A stretch of 64,000 nt of DNA from Scyliorhinus canicula (taxonomy: Eukaryota), in NCBI RefSeq assembly GCF_902713615.1, contig NW_024055479.1, positions 1-64,000 on the forward strand, written 5' to 3'. The notes under the pieces are model-generated. The model saw nothing but the letters and a program-made list of their open reading frames with translations, was not told the DNA's origin and made no database searches. The position numbers and the translations under genes were made by a program. This document shows, one piece after another, positions 34,681 to 61,122 of this stretch (position 1 is its first letter; the number at the start of each line of letters is the position of its first letter).

Positions 34681-35331
34681 TTGTTTCCTCTTGTGGGAGA
34701 GTCTAGGACCAGAGGGCATAATCTAAGAGTAAGGAGTCTCAAATTTAGGACAGAGACGAGGAAGCATTCTTCCATCAGAGGGGAGTGAATCTGTGGAATT
34801 CTTCAGCTGTGCAATCATCCTGTCTCTGGTGTTTACCATAAAAAGGCAAAGGTGAAGGTGACTTAACCCGGATGGACCGCATGGTGGCGCAGTGGCTCTT
34901 TCACTGAGGGGCCTTGAGTTCAGACACATCCCAGACAGGACTGGCGGGAAATATCTGTCTGGGAAAGGGGAGCAAACTGTATAATCGGGGAAAAGGATCA
35001 GTGTCGATGGACCTTAGAGAAAGGAGTTCAGATTAGTCTTATTTTTTCATTTTTCATTCAATATTTATTAAAATTTCAGCAAAAATATTACACAAAACTT
35101 TATTTTGATGTTTACAAAAGGGAACATAACGATTGAGTGTCACACTGAGAACAGAGCACATGCCCTCTGAGCTGCCAAATGTATGTACAACTGCAACAGA
35201 CACAAGAGAGAACAAGAGCTCAACATAAAGGGAAGGCAACAGTTGTTAATAAGGTACGAGATAAATTACTTATTTAGACATAGTAAGAAGTCTTACAACA
35301 CCAGGTTAAAGTCCAACAGGTTTGTTTCAAA

Positions 35332-35366
35332 CACGAGCTTTCGGAGCACGGCTCCTTCTTCAGGTG
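35332..35366 (-). ncRNA. Second, identical hammerhead ribozyme in the inverted PLE arm
   Basis: Exact reverse complement of 38974-39008. Confidence 0.8.
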
Positions 35367-35511
35367 AATGGAAAGGCTTGTTCCAGAAATGTTTATATAG
35401 ACACAGTCAGAGATGCCCCGGAATGCGAGCACCTGCAGGCAATCAAATCATCAAAGATGCAGAGAGAGAGGTAACTCCAGGTTAAAGGGGTGTGAATTGT
35501 CCCAAGCCAGT

Positions 35512-36735
35512 TCAGTCGGTAGGCCTCTGCAAGTCCAGGCTTGTTGGTGGGGGCCGAATGTAATGCGACATGAATCCCAGATCCCGGTTGAGTCCGCATT
35601 CATGCGTGCGGAACTTAGCTATAAGTTTTTGCTCAGCAATTTTGCGTTGTCGCGTCTCCTGAAGGCCTCCTTGTAGAATGCTGACCCGGAGATCAGAGGC
35701 TGAATGTCCTTGACTGCTGAAGTGTTCCCCAACTGGAAGGGAACAGTCCTGCCTGTTGATAGTCGCACGATGCCCGTTTATTCGTTGTCGCAGTGTCTGC
35801 ATGGTCTCGCCAATGTACCACGCTTCGGGACATCCTTTCCTGCAGCGTATGAGGTAGACTACATTGGTCGAGTCGCACGAGTATGCGCCGCGTACCTGGT
35901 GGGTGGTGTTTCCACGTGTAATGGTGGTGTCCATGTCGATGATCTGGCATGTCTTGCAGAGATTACCCTGGCAGGGTTTTGTGGTGTTGTGGTTGCTGTT
36001 CTGAAGGCTGGGTAATTTGCTGCAAACAATGGTTTGGTTGAGGTTGCGCGGTTGTTTGAAGGCCAGTAGTGGGGGTGTGGGGATGACCTTGGGAAGATGT
36101 CCATCCTCGCTGATGATGTGTTGGAGGCTGCGAAGAAGATGTCGTAGTTTCTCCGCCCCAGGAAAGTACTGGACGACGAAGGGTACTCTGTCAGTGGTGT
36201 CCCGTGTTTGTCTTCTGAGGAGGTCGGTGCGGTTTTTTGCTGTGGCGCGGTGGAACTGTCGATCAATGAGTCGAGCGCCATATCCCGTTTGTACGAGGGC
36301 ATCTTTCAGCATCTGTAGGTGTCTGTTGCGCTCCTCCTTGTCTGAGCAGATCCTGTGTATACGGAGGGCTTGTCCATAGGGGATGGCTTCTTTAATGTGT
36401 TTCGGGTGAAAGCTGGAGAAGTGGAGCATCGTGAGATTATCTGTGGGCTTGCGGTAAAGCGAGGTGCTGAGGTGACCGTCCTTGATGGAGACGAGTGTGT
36501 CCAAGAATGGAACTGAATTTGGAGAATAGTCCATGGTGAGTTTGATGGTGGGATGGAACTTATTGATGTCATCGTGTAGTCGTTTCAGTGATGTCTCGCC
36601 GTGGGTCCAAAGGAAAAAAATGTCATCGATGTATCTGGTGTATAGCATCGGTTGAAAGTCCTGTGTGGTGAGGAAGTCCTGTTCAAACTTGTGCATGAAG
36701 ATGTTGGCATATTGAGGTGCAAATTTGGTCCCCAT
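35512..36735 (-). CDS. Inverted duplicate of the PLE ORF C-terminal 407 aa
   Basis: Translation identical to the C-terminal part of 36855-38828. Confidence 0.85.
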   Translation of the reverse strand: MGTKFAPQYANIFMHKFEQDFLTTQDFQPMLYTRYIDDIFFLWTHGETSLKRLHDDINKFHPTIKLTMDYSPNSVPFLDTLVSIKDGHLSTSLYRKPTDNLTMLHFSSFHPKHIKEAIPYGQALRIHRICSDKEERNRHLQMLKDALVQTGYGARLIDRQFHRATAKNRTDLLRRQTRDTTDRVPFVVQYFPGAEKLRHLLRSLQHIISEDGHLPKVIPTPPLLAFKQPRNLNQTIVCSKLPSLQNSNHNTTKPCQGNLCKTCQIIDMDTTITRGNTTHQVRGAYSCDSTNVVYLIRCRKGCPEAWYIGETMQTLRQRINGHRATINRQDCSLPVGEHFSSQGHSASDLRVSILQGGLQETRQRKIAEQKLIAKFRTHECGLNRDLGFMSHYIRPPPTSLDLQRPTD

Positions 36736-36854
36736 GGCTGTTCCGTGCGTCTGGATGAAGAATTTGTTGTCGAAGGTGAAGACGTTGTGGTCTAGAATGA
36801 AACGGATGAGTTGCAGATTGGACCCCTTCGGAAGGCCGCTGCCCTAGACTCGAC

Positions 36855-38828
36855 ATGTATGCTCAAGCCGTCAGAAGTCGTGTCAATGCCAGATTCATCA
36901 CTCGCAATCACAAGGCAGCCTCAAACGTCACCCAAGCACAACGCAACGCCATCCGCACTCTCAAGACCAACCGCAACATCGTCATCAAACCAGCAGACAA
37001 AGGAGGGGCCACCGTCATACTGAACAGAACAGACTACTGCAAAGAAGTATACCGACAACTCGACAACCAGGAACACTACAGGCAGTTACCCGCAGATCCA
37101 ACCAAGGAACACATCCGCCAACTCAGCAGACTGATCAAGACCTTAGATCCAGACCTTCAGAACACCCTACGTGCTCTCATCCCACGTAATCCCCGCATTG
37201 GAGATCTCTACTGCCTCCCGAAAATACACAAGGCCAACACACCAGGCCGTCCTATCGTTTCAGGCAATGGGACCCTGTGTGAGAACCTCTCTGGCCACAT
37301 CGAGGGCATCTTGAAACCCATCGTACAAGGTACACCCAGCTTCTGTCGCGACACAACGGACTTCCTACAGAAGAAACTCAGCACCCATGGACCAGTTGAA
37401 CCAGGAACATTCCTCGTCACAATGGATGTCTCGGCACTCTACACCAGCATCCCCCATGACGACGGCATTGCTGCAACAGCCTCAGTCCTCAACACCGACA
37501 ACTGCCAATCCCCAGACGCAATTCTGCAACTCATCCGTTTCATTCTAGACCACAACGTCTTCACCTTCGACAACAAATTCTTCATCCAGACGCACGGAAC
37601 AGCCATGGGGACCAAATTTGCACCTCAATATGCCAACATCTTCATGCACAAGTTTGAACAGGACTTCCTCACCACACAGGACTTTCAACCGATGCTATAC
37701 ACCAGATACATCGATGACATTTTTTTCCTTTGGACCCACGGCGAGACATCACTGAAACGACTACACGATGACATCAATAAGTTCCATCCCACCATCAAAC
37801 TCACCATGGACTATTCTCCAAATTCAGTTCCATTCTTGGACACACTCGTCTCCATCAAGGACGGTCACCTCAGCACCTCGCTTTACCGCAAGCCCACAGA
37901 TAATCTCACGATGCTCCACTTCTCCAGCTTTCACCCGAAACACATTAAAGAAGCCATCCCCTATGGACAAGCCCTCCGTATACACAGGATCTGCTCAGAC
38001 AAGGAGGAGCGCAACAGACACCTACAGATGCTGAAAGATGCCCTCGTACAAACGGGATATGGCGCTCGACTCATTGATCGACAGTTCCACCGCGCCACAG
38101 CAAAAAACCGCACCGACCTCCTCAGAAGACAAACACGGGACACCACTGACAGAGTACCCTTCGTCGTCCAGTACTTTCCTGGGGCGGAGAAACTACGACA
38201 TCTTCTTCGCAGCCTCCAACACATCATCAGCGAGGATGGACATCTTCCCAAGGTCATCCCCACACCCCCACTACTGGCCTTCAAACAACCGCGCAACCTC
38301 AACCAAACCATTGTTTGCAGCAAATTACCCAGCCTTCAGAACAGCAACCACAACACCACAAAACCCTGCCAGGGTAATCTCTGCAAGACATGCCAGATCA
38401 TCGACATGGACACCACCATTACACGTGGAAACACCACCCACCAGGTACGCGGCGCATACTCGTGCGACTCGACCAATGTAGTCTACCTCATACGCTGCAG
38501 GAAAGGATGTCCCGAAGCGTGGTACATTGGCGAGACCATGCAGACACTGCGACAACGAATAAACGGGCATCGTGCGACTATCAACAGGCAGGACTGTTCC
38601 CTTCCAGTTGGGGAACACTTCAGCAGTCAAGGACATTCAGCCTCTGATCTCCGGGTCAGCATTCTACAAGGAGGCCTTCAGGAGACGCGACAACGCAAAA
38701 TTGCTGAGCAAAAACTTATAGCTAAGTTCCGCACGCATGAATGCGGACTCAACCGGGATCTGGGATTCATGTCGCATTACATTCGGCCCCCACCAACAAG
38801 CCTGGACTTGCAGAGGCCTACCGACTGA
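36855..38828 (+). CDS. PLE reverse transcriptase + GIY-YIG endonuclease (5' truncated, uninterrupted 657 aa)
   Basis: LVTMDVSALYTSIP, GTAMG, RYIDD RT motifs; CxxxxCxxC linker; VVYLIRC..WYIGET GIY-YIG. Confidence 0.92.
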   Translation: MYAQAVRSRVNARFITRNHKAASNVTQAQRNAIRTLKTNRNIVIKPADKGGATVILNRTDYCKEVYRQLDNQEHYRQLPADPTKEHIRQLSRLIKTLDPDLQNTLRALIPRNPRIGDLYCLPKIHKANTPGRPIVSGNGTLCENLSGHIEGILKPIVQGTPSFCRDTTDFLQKKLSTHGPVEPGTFLVTMDVSALYTSIPHDDGIAATASVLNTDNCQSPDAILQLIRFILDHNVFTFDNKFFIQTHGTAMGTKFAPQYANIFMHKFEQDFLTTQDFQPMLYTRYIDDIFFLWTHGETSLKRLHDDINKFHPTIKLTMDYSPNSVPFLDTLVSIKDGHLSTSLYRKPTDNLTMLHFSSFHPKHIKEAIPYGQALRIHRICSDKEERNRHLQMLKDALVQTGYGARLIDRQFHRATAKNRTDLLRRQTRDTTDRVPFVVQYFPGAEKLRHLLRSLQHIISEDGHLPKVIPTPPLLAFKQPRNLNQTIVCSKLPSLQNSNHNTTKPCQGNLCKTCQIIDMDTTITRGNTTHQVRGAYSCDSTNVVYLIRCRKGCPEAWYIGETMQTLRQRINGHRATINRQDCSLPVGEHFSSQGHSASDLRVSILQGGLQETRQRKIAEQKLIAKFRTHECGLNRDLGFMSHYIRPPPTSLDLQRPTD

Positions 38829-38973
38829 ACTGGCTTGGGACAATTCACACCCCTTTAACCTGGAGTTACCTCTCTCTCTGCATCTTTGATGATTTGATTG
38901 CCTGCAGGTGCTCGCATTCCGGGGCATCTCTGACTGTGTCTATATAAACATTTCTGGAACAAGCCTTTCCATT

Positions 38974-39008
38974 CACCTGAAGAAGGAGCCGTGCTCCGAA
39001 AGCTCGTG
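38974..39008 (+). ncRNA. Minimal type I hammerhead ribozyme in the PLE terminal repeat
   Basis: CAC-CUGAAGA-aGGAGC cgu GCUCC-GAAAGCUC/GUG: conserved core, stem II, palindromic AGCU stem III (dimer type), 3-bp stem I; predicted cut after 39005. Confidence 0.8.
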
Positions 39009-39335
39009 TTTGAAACAAACCTGTTGGACTTTAACCTGGTGTTGTAAGACTTCTTACTGTGCTCACCCCAGTCCAATGCCGGCATCTCCACATCATTATT
39101 TAGACATGACATTGAAAGAAATTATTAGTTACTATTACATTACAGCCAAAATGATCTCGTACATTTTAAACTGAAAAGCAGAAATACTGTCCATGATTGT
39201 GTCAGTTACAGATGCAGAATAATAAACTGAGAGAATTTTACTGTGAGAGTCACCAAGAGGAGATATTGTATTTCTGTCACACACAGATCATAATAAACAG
39301 CTGAGGAAAATCTACAGCGTCCGAACGTCAACCCA

Positions 39336-39344
39336 TCACTTGAT
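39336..39344 (-). CDS. IGHM: IgM heavy chain TM2 exon (I-K-stop)
   Basis: TCTCTCTCTTTTACAG|ATC AAG TGA, 138 bp after the TM1 donor; gives a K-I-K cytoplasmic tail. Confidence 0.8.
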   Translation of the reverse strand: MK

Positions 39345-39482
39345 CTGTAAAAGAGAGAGAAAATAATGAAGCAGATGTTTATGATCTGGGACATTGATGT
39401 TAGAGTTTTTACTCAATCAAACATTTAGTGCTTTTAAACAGCTTCTGTCAGTTTGATGTGTGAGTGGATTGAATCTTCTCAC

Positions 39483-39601
39483 CTTCACCAGAGTGACTGC
39501 AGCGCTGTAGGAAATGCTCAGGAAGAACAGGGTGATGAATGTGGAAGCGGTTGTCCAGATGTTGCCGTTATCATCCTCATCGTCTTCAGTCCAGGTGTGG
39601 T
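39483..39601 (-). CDS. IGHM: IgM heavy chain TM1 exon (5' boundary uncertain: 39601 with AG, or 39610 with GG)
   Basis: DHTWTEDDEDDNGNIWTTASTFITLFFLSISYSAAVTLVK|GTGAG; CART-type Ig transmembrane motif. Confidence 0.88.
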
Positions 39602-39774
39602 CTGTGGTATCCATGGGGATAGAGCCCAATAAATATAATCAGATTGTTTGTTAATACACGTTTTGTTTTTAATATTCTCGTTTCATTTTCTCCCTCTGCT
39701 ATTTCATTCTTTAATATATTTGTCATTGCATATCTACTGTTGAGTTCATGGCACTCGGAAATCGATCTCTGTAA

Positions 39775-43610: not shown

Positions 43611-44052
43611 TGGAGATTGTTGGTCCATGTTTCTGTGTGACCCTCAATCCAGTTCCCAGTGGGTGTGATACAGCAATTTAAAGCTTGACATTAATTTTAA
43701 AGGGATGGACAATGGGAGAAGCAGGAACACCGAGATCTAAATGTGATGGTTTGTTTGTCTGAAATGAGGAATTGTCCGATTTCTCCTCAGCGGGAGGAAA
43801 GTCAATGAAGATATTTTGCTGAATCCTGGAATGAATGAGTTTTACTCTGTCTCTATCCCAGGGTGTATCTGAGCTGGGAGCACTGGTTGTATCAGACTTG
43901 GGCCGAAACCTGTAGAAATTCGGGTCTCATTGAACAGATCTAATATCAGCAAAGTGGAAGCTCCATTAATTAAGCGGCTGTGTATTTAAATCACAATTGA
44001 GGAAAAAACCTTTATTATTTTTATTTTAGTTCGAAATATAACCAATCGATTC

Positions 44053-44444
44053 TCATTGACATGAATTAACGGTGTCCATCAGAGCGAGGGAAATGTTCAC
44101 AAAACTGGGTTTACCGCTGGATTTATCAACCGTTCTGTTGATGATCTTCAAGGGGATGGCTTCATGTCCCACCACACAGGAGTAAGAAGCGCCGCTGGCC
44201 CACTCCTCCGCTGCAATGGATAACAGGCTGTACATGAAGAAGGAGCTATTGCCGTTCTCCGCCATCACCTCGGTGTTCTTGTAGTTCCTGGGATTCACCG
44301 GCTTGTCATTGACGGTCCACTTGACGAAGATCTCTCGGGGGGAGAAACCTCTCACTAAGCAGCTGAGGGAGACGAATCTCTGAGCGGAGACGTCTTCAGC
44401 CGAGGGCAGGAGGACAGAGACGGACGGTTCCCGCGGATTGGGAT
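44053..44444 (-). CDS. IGHM: IgM CH4 plus secretory tailpiece
   Basis: Acceptor TTTTCTGCAG|AT; [17 protein letters not shown]; tail [19 protein letters not shown]-stop; internal TM donor AGC G|GTAAA at 44115; AATAAA at 44016-44011 and 44025-44020. Confidence 0.95.
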
Positions 44445-49391: not shown

Positions 49392-50084
49392 CAATTTGTC
49401 TTACAAAAGTTGTCTCTTCATTTGTATCTTTGCAGTTTTGGGAAATTCCCTTTGTTCAAACTGACTGATGCCCCTCCTCTCTCCACCTCACTACCCCCAC
49501 TCCCCAAACCAGAGAGTAGTGGCTTTGCTTCAAAAACACCTTCTGAATGCACCTTTATATAATTACAATAAAACTCTACATTTGAGTAATTCCAACATTC
49601 ACTAATTTTAAGATCATGCACATTGACAGCAGGAGGAGGTCATTCAATCCGTCGAGCCTCCTCCCCCATTCAGTAAGAGCCTGCCTGTGCTGATTGTGGT
49701 GTTAACCCCACATTTTGCCTGTCACTGAGACCGGGCAGTCTGCAATCCCCCCCGCCCCGCGCTCTCTGTGGGTTCCCCCATCTCTCTGCCGTTCCCGCTG
49801 GATTTCTGTACCTTCCTCCTGGACCCTTCACTATCGTTTAGCTCTCTGCTCTTTTCCACGGCTCTCTGCGCTTTCCTCCGCATCTTTGCGCTTTCGGCTG
49901 TGAATTTTCTTCCTGCTCTCTGTGCTTTGCCCATGTGCGCTGCACTTTCCCCAGTTCTTTCGGCTTTTCCCGGTTCCTGGCACATTCCGCGGGCTTTTTG
50001 AACATTTCGCCAGCACTGTGCGCTTTACCCCGATTCTTATGGCTTATCGCACACTCTATGGACTTTCGTCCGTCTCTCTGCACT

Positions 50085-51530
50085 TGCGCCAGCTCTCTGC
50101 ACCTTTCCCCGGCTCTCTGCTCCTTCACCCGACTCTCTGCCCCTTCCCCCGGTCCCCGGCTCTCTGCACTTTCCCCCGGCTCTCTGCGCCTTCCCCCGGC
50201 TCTCTGCGCCTTCCCCAGGCTCTCTGCACTCCGCCGGCTCTCTGCTCCTTCCCCCGGCTCTCTGCACTTTCCTCCGGCTCTCTGCACTTTCCCCCGGCTC
50301 TCTGCCCCTCCCCCTGGCTCTCTGCCCCTTCCCCCGGCTCTCTGCTCTTTTCCCCGGCTCTCGGCTCCTTCCCCCGCCTCTCTGCACTTTCCTCCGGCTC
50401 TCTGCTCCTTCCCCCGTCTCTCTGCTCCTTCCCACGGCTCTCGGCTCCTTCCCCCGGCTGTCTGCACTTTCCTCCGGCTCTCTCCTCCTTTCCCCGGCTC
50501 TCTGCACCTTCCCCCGGCTCTCTGCTCCATCCCCCGGCTCTCGGTTCCTTCCCACGGCTCTCTGCCCCTTCCCCCGGCTCTCCGCCCCTTCCCCCGGCTC
50601 CCCGCCCCTTCCCCCGGCTCTCTGCTCCTTCCCACGGCTCTCGGCTCCTTCCCCCGGCTGTCTGCACTTTCCTCCGGCTCTCTCCTCCTTTCCCCGGCTC
50701 TCTCCTCCTTTCCCTGGCTCTCTGCACCTTCCCCCGGCTCTCTGCTCCATCCCCCGGCTCTCGGCTCCTTCCCCCGGCTCTCTGCCCCTTCCCCCGGCTC
50801 CCCGCCCCTTCCCCCGGCTCCCCGCCCCTTCCCCCCGCTCCCCTCCCCTTCCCCCGGCTCTAGGCTCCTTCCCCCGGCTCTCTGCCCCTTCCCCCGGCTC
50901 TCTGCACTTCCCCGGCCCCAGGCTCTCTGCAATTTTCCCGTCTCTCTCCACATCCCCCCCCCCCCCCGGCTCTCTGCGCCTTCCCCCCGCTCTTTGCGCC
51001 TCCCCCCGACTCTCTGCGCCTTCCCACGACTCTCTGCCCCTTCCTCCGGCTCTCTGCACTTCCCCGGCCCCAGGCTCTCTGCAATTTCCCCGTCTCTCTG
51101 TCCCTTCCCTCCCGGCTCTCTGCTCCTTCCTCCGGCTCTCTGCCCCTTCTCCCGGCTCTCTCCTCCTTCCCCCGACTCGCTGCTCCTTCCCCCGGCTCTC
51201 TGCTCCTTCCCCCGGCTCTCTGCTCCTTCCTCCGGCTCTCTGCCCCTTCTCCCGGCTCTCTGCTCCTTCCCCCGACTCGCTGCTCCTTCCCCCGGCTCTC
51301 TGCTCCTTCCCCCGGCTCTCTGCTCCTTCCTCCGGCTCTCTGCCCCTTCTCCCGGCTCTCTGCTCCTTCCCCCGACTCGCTGCTCCTTCCCCCGGCTCTC
51401 TGCTCCTTCCTCCGGCTCTCTGCCCCTTCTCTCGGCTCTCTGCGCCTTCCTCCGGCTCTCAGCTCCTTCCGCCGACTCCCTGTTCCTTCCCCGGCTCCCT
51501 GCTCCTTCGCCCGGTTCTCTATGATTCTTT
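50085..51530. repeat. ~20-bp purine/pyrimidine array (sense strand GAAGGAGCAGAGAGCCGGGG); degenerate flanks to ~49720 and ~51810
   Basis: Plus strand almost entirely C/T; CCCCGGCTCTCTGC recurs about every 20 bp. Confidence 0.95.
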
Positions 51531-51829
51531 CCAGCTTTCTGATCTTTTCTACGGTTCTCTGTACGTTCCCCCGCACCTCTGTCCTTTCCGCTGCATCTCT
51601 GCGCTTTCCACCCGACTCTATCATTTCGCCGCCTCTTCGTCTTCTCCCCCGCCCCAGCGCTTTTTCTCGGCAGAGGGCCTTTCGTCCGGCTTCTCTCCGG
51701 CTCTCTGCACTTTCCTCCCGCTCTCGCCACGCCCGTGGTACGATCCACATTCGGGCGCCACTCGTCATCCGTTTCGCTCCAGTTCTCTATTCCTCTCTCG
51801 TTCCAGACGCTCCCTTGTTAATTTCCTGA

Positions 51830-53310
51830 GCATGAGTGAGATGGGATGAGTGAGTAATTGAGTGAGGGTAGGAGAGTGAGTGTGGGTGAGTGAGTAACTG
51901 AGTGAGGGTAGGAGTGTGAGTGTGGGTGAGTGAGTAATTGAGTGAGGGTAGGAGAGTGAGTGCGGGTGAGTGAGTAACTGAGTGAGGATAGGAGAGTGAG
52001 TGCGGGTGAGTAAGTGACTGAAATGAAATGAAAATCGCTTATTGTCACGAGTAGGCTTCAATGAAGTTACTGTGAAAAGCCCCTAGTCGCCACATTCCGG
52101 CGCCTCTTCGGGGAGGCTGTTACGGGAATTGAACTGTGCTGCTGGCTTGCTTGGTCTGCTTTCAAAGCCAGTGATTTTAGCCCTGAGCTAGTGAGGATAG
52201 GAGAGTGAGTGCGGGTGAGTGAGTAACTGTGTGAGGATAGGAGAGTGAGAGTGGGTGAGTGAGTATCTGAGTGAGAGTAGGAGAGTGAGTGCGGGTGAGT
52301 GAGTAATGAGTGAGGGTAGGAGAGTGAGTCTGGGTGAGTGAGTAGGTGAGTGAGGGTAGGAGAGTGAGTGTGGGTGAGTGAGTAACTGAGTGAGGGTAGG
52401 AGAGTGAGTGAGGGTGAGTGAGTAACTGAGTGAGGGTAGGAGAGTGAGTGAGGGTGAGTGAGTAACTGAGTGAGGGTAGGAGAGTGAGTGTGGGTGAGTG
52501 AGTGAGGGTAGTAGGGTGAGTGCGGTTAAATGAGTAACTTAGTGAGGGTAGGAGAGTGAGTGCGGGTGAGTGAGTAACTTAGTGAGGGTAGGGGAGTGAG
52601 GGCGGGTGAGTGAGTAACTTAGTGAGGGTAGGGGAGTGAGGGTGGGTGAGTGAGTAACTGAGTGAGGGTAGGAGAGTGAGTGCGGGTGAGTGAGTAACTG
52701 AGTGAGGGTAGGAGAGTGAGTGCGGGTGAGTGAGTAACTGAGTGAGGGTAGGAGAGTGAGTGTGGGTGAGTGAGTAACTGAGTGAGGGTAGGAGAGTGAG
52801 TGCGGGTGAGTGAGTAACTGAGTGAGGGTAGGAGAGTGAGTGTGGGTGAGTGAATAACTGAGTGAGGGTAGGAGAGTGAGTGTTGGTGAGTGAGTAACTG
52901 AGTGAGGGTAGGAGAGTGAGCGCGGGTGAGTAACTGAGTGAGGGTAGGTGAGTGAGTGCGGGTGAGTGAGTCACTGAGTGAGGGTAGGAGTGTGGGCAAG
53001 TGAGTAACTGAGCGACGGTAGGAGAGTGAGTGTGGGTAGTTGAGTGAGTAACTGAGTGAGGGTAGGAGAGTGAGTGTGGGTGAGTAAGTAACTGAGTGAG
53101 AGTAGGAGAGTGAGTACGGGTAGTTGAGCGAGTGAGGGTAGGAGAGTGAGTGCGGGTGAGTGAGTAACTGAGTGAGGGTAGGAGAGTGAGTGCGGGTGAG
53201 TGAGTAACTGAGTGAGGGTAGGAGAGTGAGTGCGGGTGAGTGAGTAACTGAGTGAGGTTAGGAGAGTGAGTGCGGGTGAGTGAGTAACTGAGTGAGGGTA
53301 GGAGAGTGAG
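51830..53310. repeat. 40-bp tandem array (GAGTGAGTAACTGAGTGAGGGTAGGAGAGTGAGTGCGGGT), interrupted by a short SINE at 52019-52190
   Basis: Period 40 read directly; SINE matches 8557-8719. Confidence 0.95.
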
Positions 53311-53699
53311 AGAAAGAGTGTGTGGGAGAGAGAGAAACAGTGTGTGAGATAGACTGGATGCGAGTGTATTGGAGAATTGTGCGTGAAACAGCTAAATTGT
53401 GTGCATGCATCTGTAGGAGTGTGCATGTGGGAGAGAGAGTGAGAGCATGTGAGAGAATGTTTGTGAGACAGAGTGCGTGTGTCTGACAGAGTGTGCGAGA
53501 GAGGGCTGGTGTGTGTGAGTGGGTCAGAGAGAAAATGTGTGTGCGAGAGTGTGAATTTGTACATGTGTGAGAGTGTGTCTGTGTGTAAGGATGCGTCTGC
53601 GAGTATGAATTTGAGCGTTTCGTGTGTGAGAGTGTTGGAGAGAACGATACTGTGTATTTGTGTTTTGAGAGAGTGCATGTGAGATAGAGAACCAGAGAG

Positions 53700-54050
53700 T
53701 GAGTTGAATAAAAACGTGTTACTGCGGATGCTGCAATCTGAAAGGAAAACAGAAGCTTCCTTCTCCCTCTTCTCGCTCCACAGAGACTGCCAGACCTGCT
53801 GAGATTGTCGAGTATTTTCTGTTTTTGTTTCAGATTCCAGCATCCACAGTAATTTGCTGTTATCTTCCTGTTTAATTCACTGCCTCTTCTCTTCCAGTAA
53901 AGTATAACCTGAAGAAGCACTGCTCTTCTCTCCGACAGGATTTCCAACTCCCTGCAACTTTGACAAAGGGTCATTCAAGACTCGGAAGATTAGCTCCTTT
54001 CTCTCTCCACAGATGCTGTCAGACCTGCTGACATTGTCCAATATTGTTTG
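53700..54050. repeat. Short remnants resembling PLE-type terminal repeats
   Basis: TGCGGATGCTGCAATCTGAAA and CCACAGA..TGCCAGACCTGCTGAG..CAGATTCCAGCATC motifs in both orientations. Confidence 0.45.
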
Positions 54051-54191
54051 ACTCTGGTGATCGTTTGTTTGTGTGTGGGTGTGTGAGAGAAGCAGTGAGC
54101 GAGGGTGTGGCTGTGTCTATGAGACGGTGTGTGTGTCTCTGTGCGTGTGAGATAGAGAGAGACTATGTAAGTGAATGAGTGAATGTGTGTG

Positions 54192-54540
54192 AGAGAGTGT
54201 AATGTGCGTATGTGTCTGTCTGGCTCACTCCCAGTCTCCATATTCTCATTCATCCTCACACTACACACTCCCATAAACTCTGATAGTGAGTGTGTGTGAG
54301 AGTGTAATGCGTATATGTGTCTGCCTGGCTCACTCCCAGTCTCCATATTCTCATTCATCCTCACACTCTACACACTCCCATCCACTCTGATAGTGAGTGT
54401 GTGTGAGAGAGTGTAATGCGTATATTTAGAATTTAGAATTTAGAATTTAGAACAGTACAGCACACAATATGTGTCTGCCTGGCTCACTCCCAGTCTTCAT
54501 ATTCTCATTCACCCTTTCCCTCCACACATTCCCGTCCACT
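54192..54540. repeat. Three direct copies of a ~110-bp unit
   Basis: TGTCTGYCTGGCTCACTCCCAGTCTYCATATTCTCATTCA occurs three times. Confidence 0.85.
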
Positions 54541-60631: not shown

Positions 60632-60994
60632 CTGTAATTACCGTCACCGTGGTCCCTGGTGCCCAGTAGTCCAGAGCCCAACCCTCTGACCCTCTTGCAC
60701 AGTAATAGATGGCGGTGTCTTCGGTCTTTAGGTTCGTCATGGCCAAAGAGGAAATGTTGTTTGAAGTGTCTTTGGACGCAGTGAATCGATCTTTAATTGT
60801 TGGGGCGTAGCTGTTGCTGGATGAAGTATAGTCGTAAACCACCAACTCCAGCCCCTGTCCAGGAACCTGCCGGACCCAGTTCATGCCGTGGCTGCCAAGG
60901 TCGAAGCCGCTGGTTTTACAGGTCAGTGTCAGGGAGCCTCCGGGACGCCCGATCTCTGCCTCCGGCTGAGTCAACACAACATCCGACTGGACAC
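60632..60994 (-). CDS. IGHV: Pre-joined IgH VDJ exon
   Basis: TTTTTACAG|[53 protein letters not shown]|GTAAG; 363 nt, in frame; no RSS or intersegment DNA. Confidence 0.95.
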
Positions 60995-61122
60995 CTGTAA
61001 AAATATATCGAAAAGCCCGAGGATTAATGCTGGTGAAATGATTGGTGACTCTGGAACATTCCAGAGAGAGACTAACACTGAGACAGTAACAGTGAGAGAC
61101 TTGGACAATAAAAACTACTCAC

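Follow-up and report, generated by a model that had tools for sequence, protein, structure and literature searches.

A young Penelope-like element separates the membrane exons of a shark IgM gene from their natural polyadenylation signals

What becomes of the membrane form of an antibody when a retroelement comes to lie between its last coding exon and its polyadenylation signals? The question is raised by the 64-kb stretch of Scyliorhinus canicula DNA studied here (positions 1 to 64,000 of contig NW_024055479.1; hereafter the window, which is without any N). On its minus strand lies a complete IgM heavy-chain gene of the cluster type, with a Penelope-like element (PLE) inside the 3' untranslated region (UTR) of its membrane (TM) exons. 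The reading that we favour, with a probability of about 0.72, is that a dead PLE was recently inserted into a redundant, germline-joined IgM cluster, and that the locus records neutral decay of the membrane route and not a regulatory device.

The first membrane exon, TM1 (DTTDHTWTEDDEDDNGNIWTTASTFITLFFLSISYSAAVTLVK), was delimited by its translated reading frame and by RNA contig joints, and occupies 39483..39610 on the minus strand. The coding part of TM2 consists of ATC AAG TGA (39336..39344, minus), with the stop codon at 39338-39336. The RNA contig joints run from the CH4 donor at 44116 to ~39610 and from 39483 to 39344; the TM1-TM2 intron (39345-39482) is spliced out, its minus-strand GT..AG ends lying at the joint 39344->39483. 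The stop codon is followed by a proximal 3'UTR of 240 nt (39096..39335, minus) that aligns with the UTR of the bamboo shark, after which the element begins. No AATAAA or ATTAAA was found on the sense strand between the TM2 stop and the element; weak variant hexamers are present there at 39272 (AATACA), 39242 (AGTAAA) and 39170 (TTTAAA). The last 12 nt of the proximal 3'UTR (39107-39096, minus) are repeated at 35270..35281 (minus), and this 12-bp direct repeat, TTATTTAGACAT, is the target-site duplication that brackets the whole insertion (35282..39095, 3,814 bp, not assigned to one strand). Beyond the far copy lies the distal 3'UTR (35045..35269, minus), in which the two natural poly(A) signals, 35104-35099 and 35069-35064, are found.

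Four sequencing runs were compared with the window: X1 and X10 (RNA contigs), X28 (DNA contigs, probably from an animal other than the reference) and X23 (raw oligo-dT RNA reads). The contigs of X1, X10 and X28 show presence, not absence, as Logan contigs drop rare variants, and on neither side of the element does any sequencing run contain more than about half of the words sampled. One unbroken X10 contig (contig 9, 684 nt) joins the end of CH4 (44116-44145) to TM1 and then to TM2 plus the UTR down to 39096, from where it continues at 35269 and stops at 35108, within 4 nt of the first AATAAA. Since it lacks both the TM1-TM2 intron and the element with one copy of the duplication, it represents a spliced TM mRNA from an insertion-free copy. 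An X28 DNA contig carries the identical empty joint. In both contigs the joint 35269->39096 skips exactly 3,826 nt, the length of the element plus one duplication copy, which argues that the insertion is not a product of chance. RNA contig depth is present in the bin 35042-35212 and zero in 34871-35041, where the DNA run still continues, and this drop past both AATAAA places the natural 3' ends at these two signals. The bamboo-shark TM 3'UTR (L001, 10113-10600) is uninterrupted and ~70% identical to either side of the site; the second poly(A) signal, which reads GATAAA in that species, stands in a conserved block. Such conservation over the full length of the UTR exceeds what is expected of a neutral UTR.

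The insertion is thus real, lies inside the transcribed TM 3'UTR, and displaces the natural poly(A) sites by 3.8 kb. The original prediction had described a young PLE in this UTR about 230 bp past the TM2 stop, with no canonical signal on the sense strand ahead of it and two AATAAA (35104-35099, 35069-35064) displaced by 3.8 kb to just beyond the far duplication. These points are borne out by the motif scan and by the empty-site TM mRNA contig reaching 35108, the measured distance being 240 nt.

The inserted sequence consists of two PLE copies in opposite orientation. An inverted repeat of 1,536 nt (35282-36817 and 37523-39058) with zero mismatches encloses a 705-nt spacer. The longer copy, 5'-truncated and antisense to IgM, spans 36818..39095 on the plus strand, while the shorter inverted copy, in IgM sense, is the arm at 35282..36817 on the minus strand. 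A 37-nt tail (39059..39095, plus) lies outside the inverted repeat at one end only. The longer copy contains an open reading frame (ORF) of 657 amino acids (36855..38828, plus) with a reverse transcriptase (RT) domain (RVT_1, E 4.8e-10, 39.9 bits, above the cut-off) and, at its C-terminus, a GIY-YIG endonuclease; the motifs DKG and YIDD can be read in this frame. The Pfam match to GIY-YIG (E 3.4e-4, 21.3 bits) falls just below the 22.6 cut-off. Direct reading nevertheless finds the pattern GIY..C..C..YIG as VVYLIRCRKGCPEAWYIG, followed by R..H and H (CCHH), and two cysteines between GIY and YIG mark PLE nucleases (PMC8557442). Ahead of the endonuclease, a CX4CxxC linker (CQGNLCKTC, at residue 505) points to a Neptune-like element, as a CX2-5CxxC linker is present in Neptune and absent in Penelope/Poseidon (PMC8557442). 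The nearest Atlas clusters carry HTH_animal, DUF8422, RVT_1 and GIY-YIG; in the nearest-neighbour searches no match bears a PLE name.

The 657-residue frame is 90% identical to a Scyliorhinus torazame protein, its shark relatives being 84-90% identical, and it aligns to residues 239-880 of a relative of 881 residues (P0005). Full-length relatives have ~830-890 residues, so that ~225-240 residues are missing at the N-terminus. The frame is open across 36818, and the 12 codons before the first Met still align with relatives (EGR...LD-M/I-YA) as far as the breakpoint at 36818, from which it follows that the long copy is 5'-truncated inside its ORF. An X1 RNA contig from another family member extends 72 nt beyond 36817. 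With no complete ORF and no 5' region, the element is inert as a transposon. A self-BLAST of the element and UTR against the 64-kb window returned neither a further PLE copy nor another copy of the TM/UTR. Among the contigs and reads aligned to the window, family copies end near 39060 or at 39093-39096, and the family is very abundant at at least 95% identity. The RT and GIY-YIG domains, the tail, the twin inverted copies, the identical arms and this abundance together identify a young PLE. If rates of 2e-9 to 5e-10 per site per year are assumed, 0 differences over 1,536 bp set a 95% upper bound on its age of ~0.5-2 million years.

How might such a structure have formed? A single retrotransposition event, which brought a 5'-truncated PLE into an AT-rich site of the TM 3'UTR, would suffice. 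Both strands of a 12-bp staggered cut would have primed cDNA synthesis on PLE RNA, with the inner RT start site used for one priming and the outer site for the second; this would leave the 37-nt tail at one end. The two cDNAs, joined head to head, would then yield identical 1,536-bp 3' parts within one target-site duplication. A parallel is found in L1 twin priming, in which cDNA synthesis is primed from the two ends of a staggered cut and an inverted segment results when the products are linked. The inverted part in L1 comes from further 5' in the RNA, whereas both PLE arms share the same 3' end, as they would if the primings start at the PLE 3' start sites. Two independent insertions were considered and rejected, given the single duplication and the identical arms.

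These steps agree with what has been established for related elements. In an anole PLE, two adjacent RT start sites bracket the tail, both DNA strands are cleaved and extended, and targets are AT-rich (PMC11167929); the two start sites and the cleavage and extension of both strands would explain the shape of the shark insertion. The signature reported for PLE insertions comprises a 5'-truncated copy in inverted orientation, a tail of 30-40 bp on one of the two ends, a terminal repeat that contains a hammerhead, and a target that is AT-rich (PMC8557442). With the endonuclease-bearing PLEs (Neptune, Penelope/Poseidon and Nematis; PMC8557442, PMC11167929) the shark element shares the order of RT and C-terminal GIY-YIG with two core cysteines, as well as the inverted 5'-truncated copy at the 5' side, the tail, the terminal-repeat hammerhead and the AT-rich target with its duplication. 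Its 37-nt tail matches the PLE tail that lies between the two RT start sites (PMC11167929, PMC8557442). Nothing essential sets it apart from canonical PLEs, although ~225-240 codons have been lost from this copy and it lacks a direct pseudo-LTR (long terminal repeat).

The terminal part of each arm carries a candidate ribozyme. A minimal hammerhead motif of 35 nt lies in IgM sense at 35332..35366 (minus), with a predicted cut between 35335 and 35334, and a descriptor matches its mirror in PLE sense, downstream of the ORF, at 38974..39008 (plus). Read by hand, the motif is CUGAAGA-A-GGAGC/GCUCC-GAAA-GC-UC, with a single additional A, a helix II of 5 bp that G10.1-C11.1 closes, a palindromic GC where helix III would stand, and finally UC and a helix I of 3 bp. 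The descriptor matches these two sites only in the 64 kb, with 0 matches in 200 shuffles, although these statistics are weak, as the descriptor was written after the sequence had been seen. Rfam searches, first of 8 kb and then, with E up to 10, of the 201 bases that surround the motif, found no hammerhead family and returned chance matches only (bxd_6, CAESAR and snoR639). With the minimal PLE hammerheads described by Cervera and De la Pena in 2014 (PMC4209133), the motif shares the CUGANGA and GAAA boxes, the G10.1-C11.1 pair, the short helix I and the palindromic GC at 15.2/16.2 that replaces helix III. Unlike them, it has no Rfam match, and an IgM-sense transcript would contain one sense copy with its perfect complement upstream. 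Single minimal PLE hammerheads are inactive and dimers weakly active (PMC4209133), and in the predicted fold all 29 of 29 core nucleotides are paired with the complement. The motif is probably family baggage and inactive here; cleavage of a read-through RNA by the single sense copy, of a dimer-dependent type and sequestered in a duplex, is unlikely (PMC4209133). The original prediction was correct in placing a sense hammerhead at 35366-35332, but the role it proposed for the motif is unsupported.

Some further observations concern the PLE family. The last ~170 nt of the element (35213-35383 and 38975-39145, with hammerhead and tail) have 5-10x the word depth of its interior in the DNA run and ~1,000x that of the UTR, which may reflect that this end is shared either by a very large number of short copies with 5' truncations or by a family of non-autonomous elements. 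At position 39077 most family copies have C and the inserted copy T. In X23, 62 raw RNA reads at the loose end at 35281 join the PLE 3' end to one foreign flank with 91% agreement, so that another locus has a copy of this end within an expressed transcript. The PLE protein is 84% identical to its counterpart in the sevengill shark Heptranchias perlo and 90% to that of Scyliorhinus torazame (P0002 and P0003); such identity is high for a transposon across long-split lineages and could reflect very slow evolution or horizontal spread.

A second lesion of the membrane route, overlooked by the original prediction, lies at the TM1 acceptor. The dinucleotide before TM1 (39611..39612, minus) is GG and not AG: the window reads catGG|ATACC and the bamboo shark, at the aligned position of L001, catAG|ATTCA. 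This species served as outgroup, as a homology search with the TM frame gave a single match, a bamboo-shark protein of 78% identity; in an exact look-up in public assemblies the TM1 reading frame was not on record. The acceptor position, directly before 39610, is fixed by the mRNA junction, and an expressed insertion-free copy that splices there must possess a working acceptor. The copy with GG seems to have lost its TM1 acceptor by one base, the polarity of the change resting on outgroup and mRNA. An in-frame AG lies 9 nt downstream (39603-39602) and is present in the bamboo shark too.

What, then, would be made from the inserted copy? Its secretory route is intact, with the tailpiece followed by AATAAA at 44025 and 44016 (minus). 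A transcript that passes these signals would have to cross 3.8 kb with a 1.5-kb perfect duplex before it meets the conserved poly(A) signals, and the displaced signals combined with the GG acceptor would most likely lower or abolish the normal TM mRNA of this copy. We would expect little or no such mRNA, judging from the acceptor change and by analogy with inverted Alu pairs (PMC4378195). Four letters mark the inserted copy (39201G, 39245G, 39133T and 35194C); those at 39201 and 39245 are absent from all contigs and reads of the four runs, and X28 gives the letter of the window at 35194 a depth of ~27 against 1,343. Between the mRNA contig of X10 and the window, 1/162, 5/249 and 0/129 positions differ, and all TM RNA seen derives from insertion-free copies. 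The supply of TM mRNA by many such copies is what argues for neutral decay rather than regulation, and with the gene being one of many near-identical IgM copies, an effect of the insertion on the animal is unlikely.

Several points weigh against this reading. RNA with the letters of the inserted copy was not seen in X1, X10 or X23, so that the loss of its TM form is inferred, and X23 has ~1-2 reads over the UTR, too few to map 3' ends. The filled site is not confirmed in the independent DNA run, X28 being without a contig that bears the inserted copy's letters at 39129-39245. Word depth suggests tens of near-identical UTR copies, but a count of paralogs made in this way is rough. The identity of the arms could be due to gene conversion from one to the other, in which case the insertion would appear younger than its true age. 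Finally, the in-frame AG at 39603-39602 might rescue TM1 splicing and give a TM form three residues shorter.

The insertion could alternatively have a biological consequence of its own: read-through of the element would produce a 1.5-kb duplex that triggers editing, dicing, nuclear retention or innate sensing, leaving the copy secretory-only. We consider this unlikely, although parts of it agree with the locus, in which the stretch from the stop to the element is free of canonical signals, the natural sites follow downstream and the secretory route is intact. The hairpin anticipated by the original prediction is recovered in the predicted fold, with 1,536/1,536 pairs in register and a minimum free energy of -3,656 kcal/mol. 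Inverted Alu pairs in human 3'UTRs (IRAlus), which likewise place opposite retroelement copies in a 3'UTR and form a long intramolecular duplex, cause nuclear retention (PMC4378195, PMC4387710) and are a model of the way in which mRNA export or translation could be reduced by the insertion. Unlike IRAlus, the shark arms are five times longer, perfect and the product of one insertion event, the poly(A) site is displaced, and transcription through the arms, like editing or retention, is a prediction. Retention of the paraspeckle type is, to our knowledge, not known from sharks. Neither junction-spanning nor copy-specific RNA appears in X1, X10 or X23, and the four runs list no contig or read bridging the UTR/PLE junction of the IgM locus. 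The A>G differences listed in the arms nearly all stand in the DNA run too, the exception being one low-depth contig at 38897, and therefore give no sign of editing, although hyper-edited reads would fail the 95% filter. Many insertion-free copies, moreover, produce TM mRNA, and TM splicing may already be blocked at the altered acceptor, before the UTR comes into play. Suppression through read-through of the hairpin is therefore unsupported, as is the selective suppression of the B-cell receptor form that the original prediction had put forward, with no RNA of the inserted copy in three RNA runs.

That the insertion is harmless, with a normal protein made from a TM mRNA that ends early, is rather unlikely as well. 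Such an mRNA could end upstream of the element, at the variant hexamers AGTAAA 39242 or TTTAAA 39170, or within its sense arm, where two canonical signals lie on the minus strand (35777..36396): ATTAAA at 36396-36391, which the original prediction missed, and AATAAA at 35782-35777, which it had named correctly. The insertion-free transcripts, however, pass the upstream variants to reach the distal signals, so that these variants must be weak, and both cryptic signals lie in the second arm, which pairs with the first once it is made.

A conversion of the cluster into a hard-wired antibody gene for secretion only is, in our view, quite improbable. This would agree with two independent lesions in the membrane route of a gene whose other parts are intact, namely the leader and already joined, in-frame VDJ (~61.2-60.7 kb, minus), the four constant exons CH1 to CH4 (48.2-44.1 kb, minus, with canonical splice sites), the tailpiece and the secretory signals. 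If true, it could hint at a division of labour between IgM clusters in sharks.

An assembly artefact, in which a fold-back or chimeric long read made the inverted duplication, is highly improbable: perfect long palindromes can come from library artefacts and the filled site is unseen in one independent DNA run (X28), but the whole unit is flanked by a single 12-bp duplication, the spacer is a collinear continuation of the PLE, and a one-end tail with an inverted truncated copy are textbook PLE features (PMC8557442).

Probable neutral decay of one copy's membrane route leaves current knowledge of B-cell receptor regulation unchanged. The locus nonetheless flags one IgM cluster with a probably disabled membrane form, which matters for telling functional from decaying clusters when shark immunoglobulin genes are annotated. 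It also offers a clean and datable example of what appears to be a twin-primed PLE insertion, the exact empty site of which can be seen both in paralogs that are expressed and in a second shark species. Should the filled and empty forms be alleles, they would provide a natural test of the effect of a 1.5-kb perfect 3'UTR duplex on mRNA in cartilaginous fish.

Other features of the window were noted in passing. The germline-joined VDJ (60700-61120, minus) is in frame and retains both V-domain cysteines and the WVRQ tryptophan, and its J motif reads WAPGT against the usual WGxGT. The J-C intron (49800-54400) contains long tandem arrays, G-rich on the non-template strand and serine/threonine-like, with extreme GC skew and a GC content of 0.65 at 50-52 kb. 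Just past the gene, a repeat at 34700-34870 has depth in both RNA and DNA runs, with all contigs differing from the window at 34725, and is probably another dispersed element.

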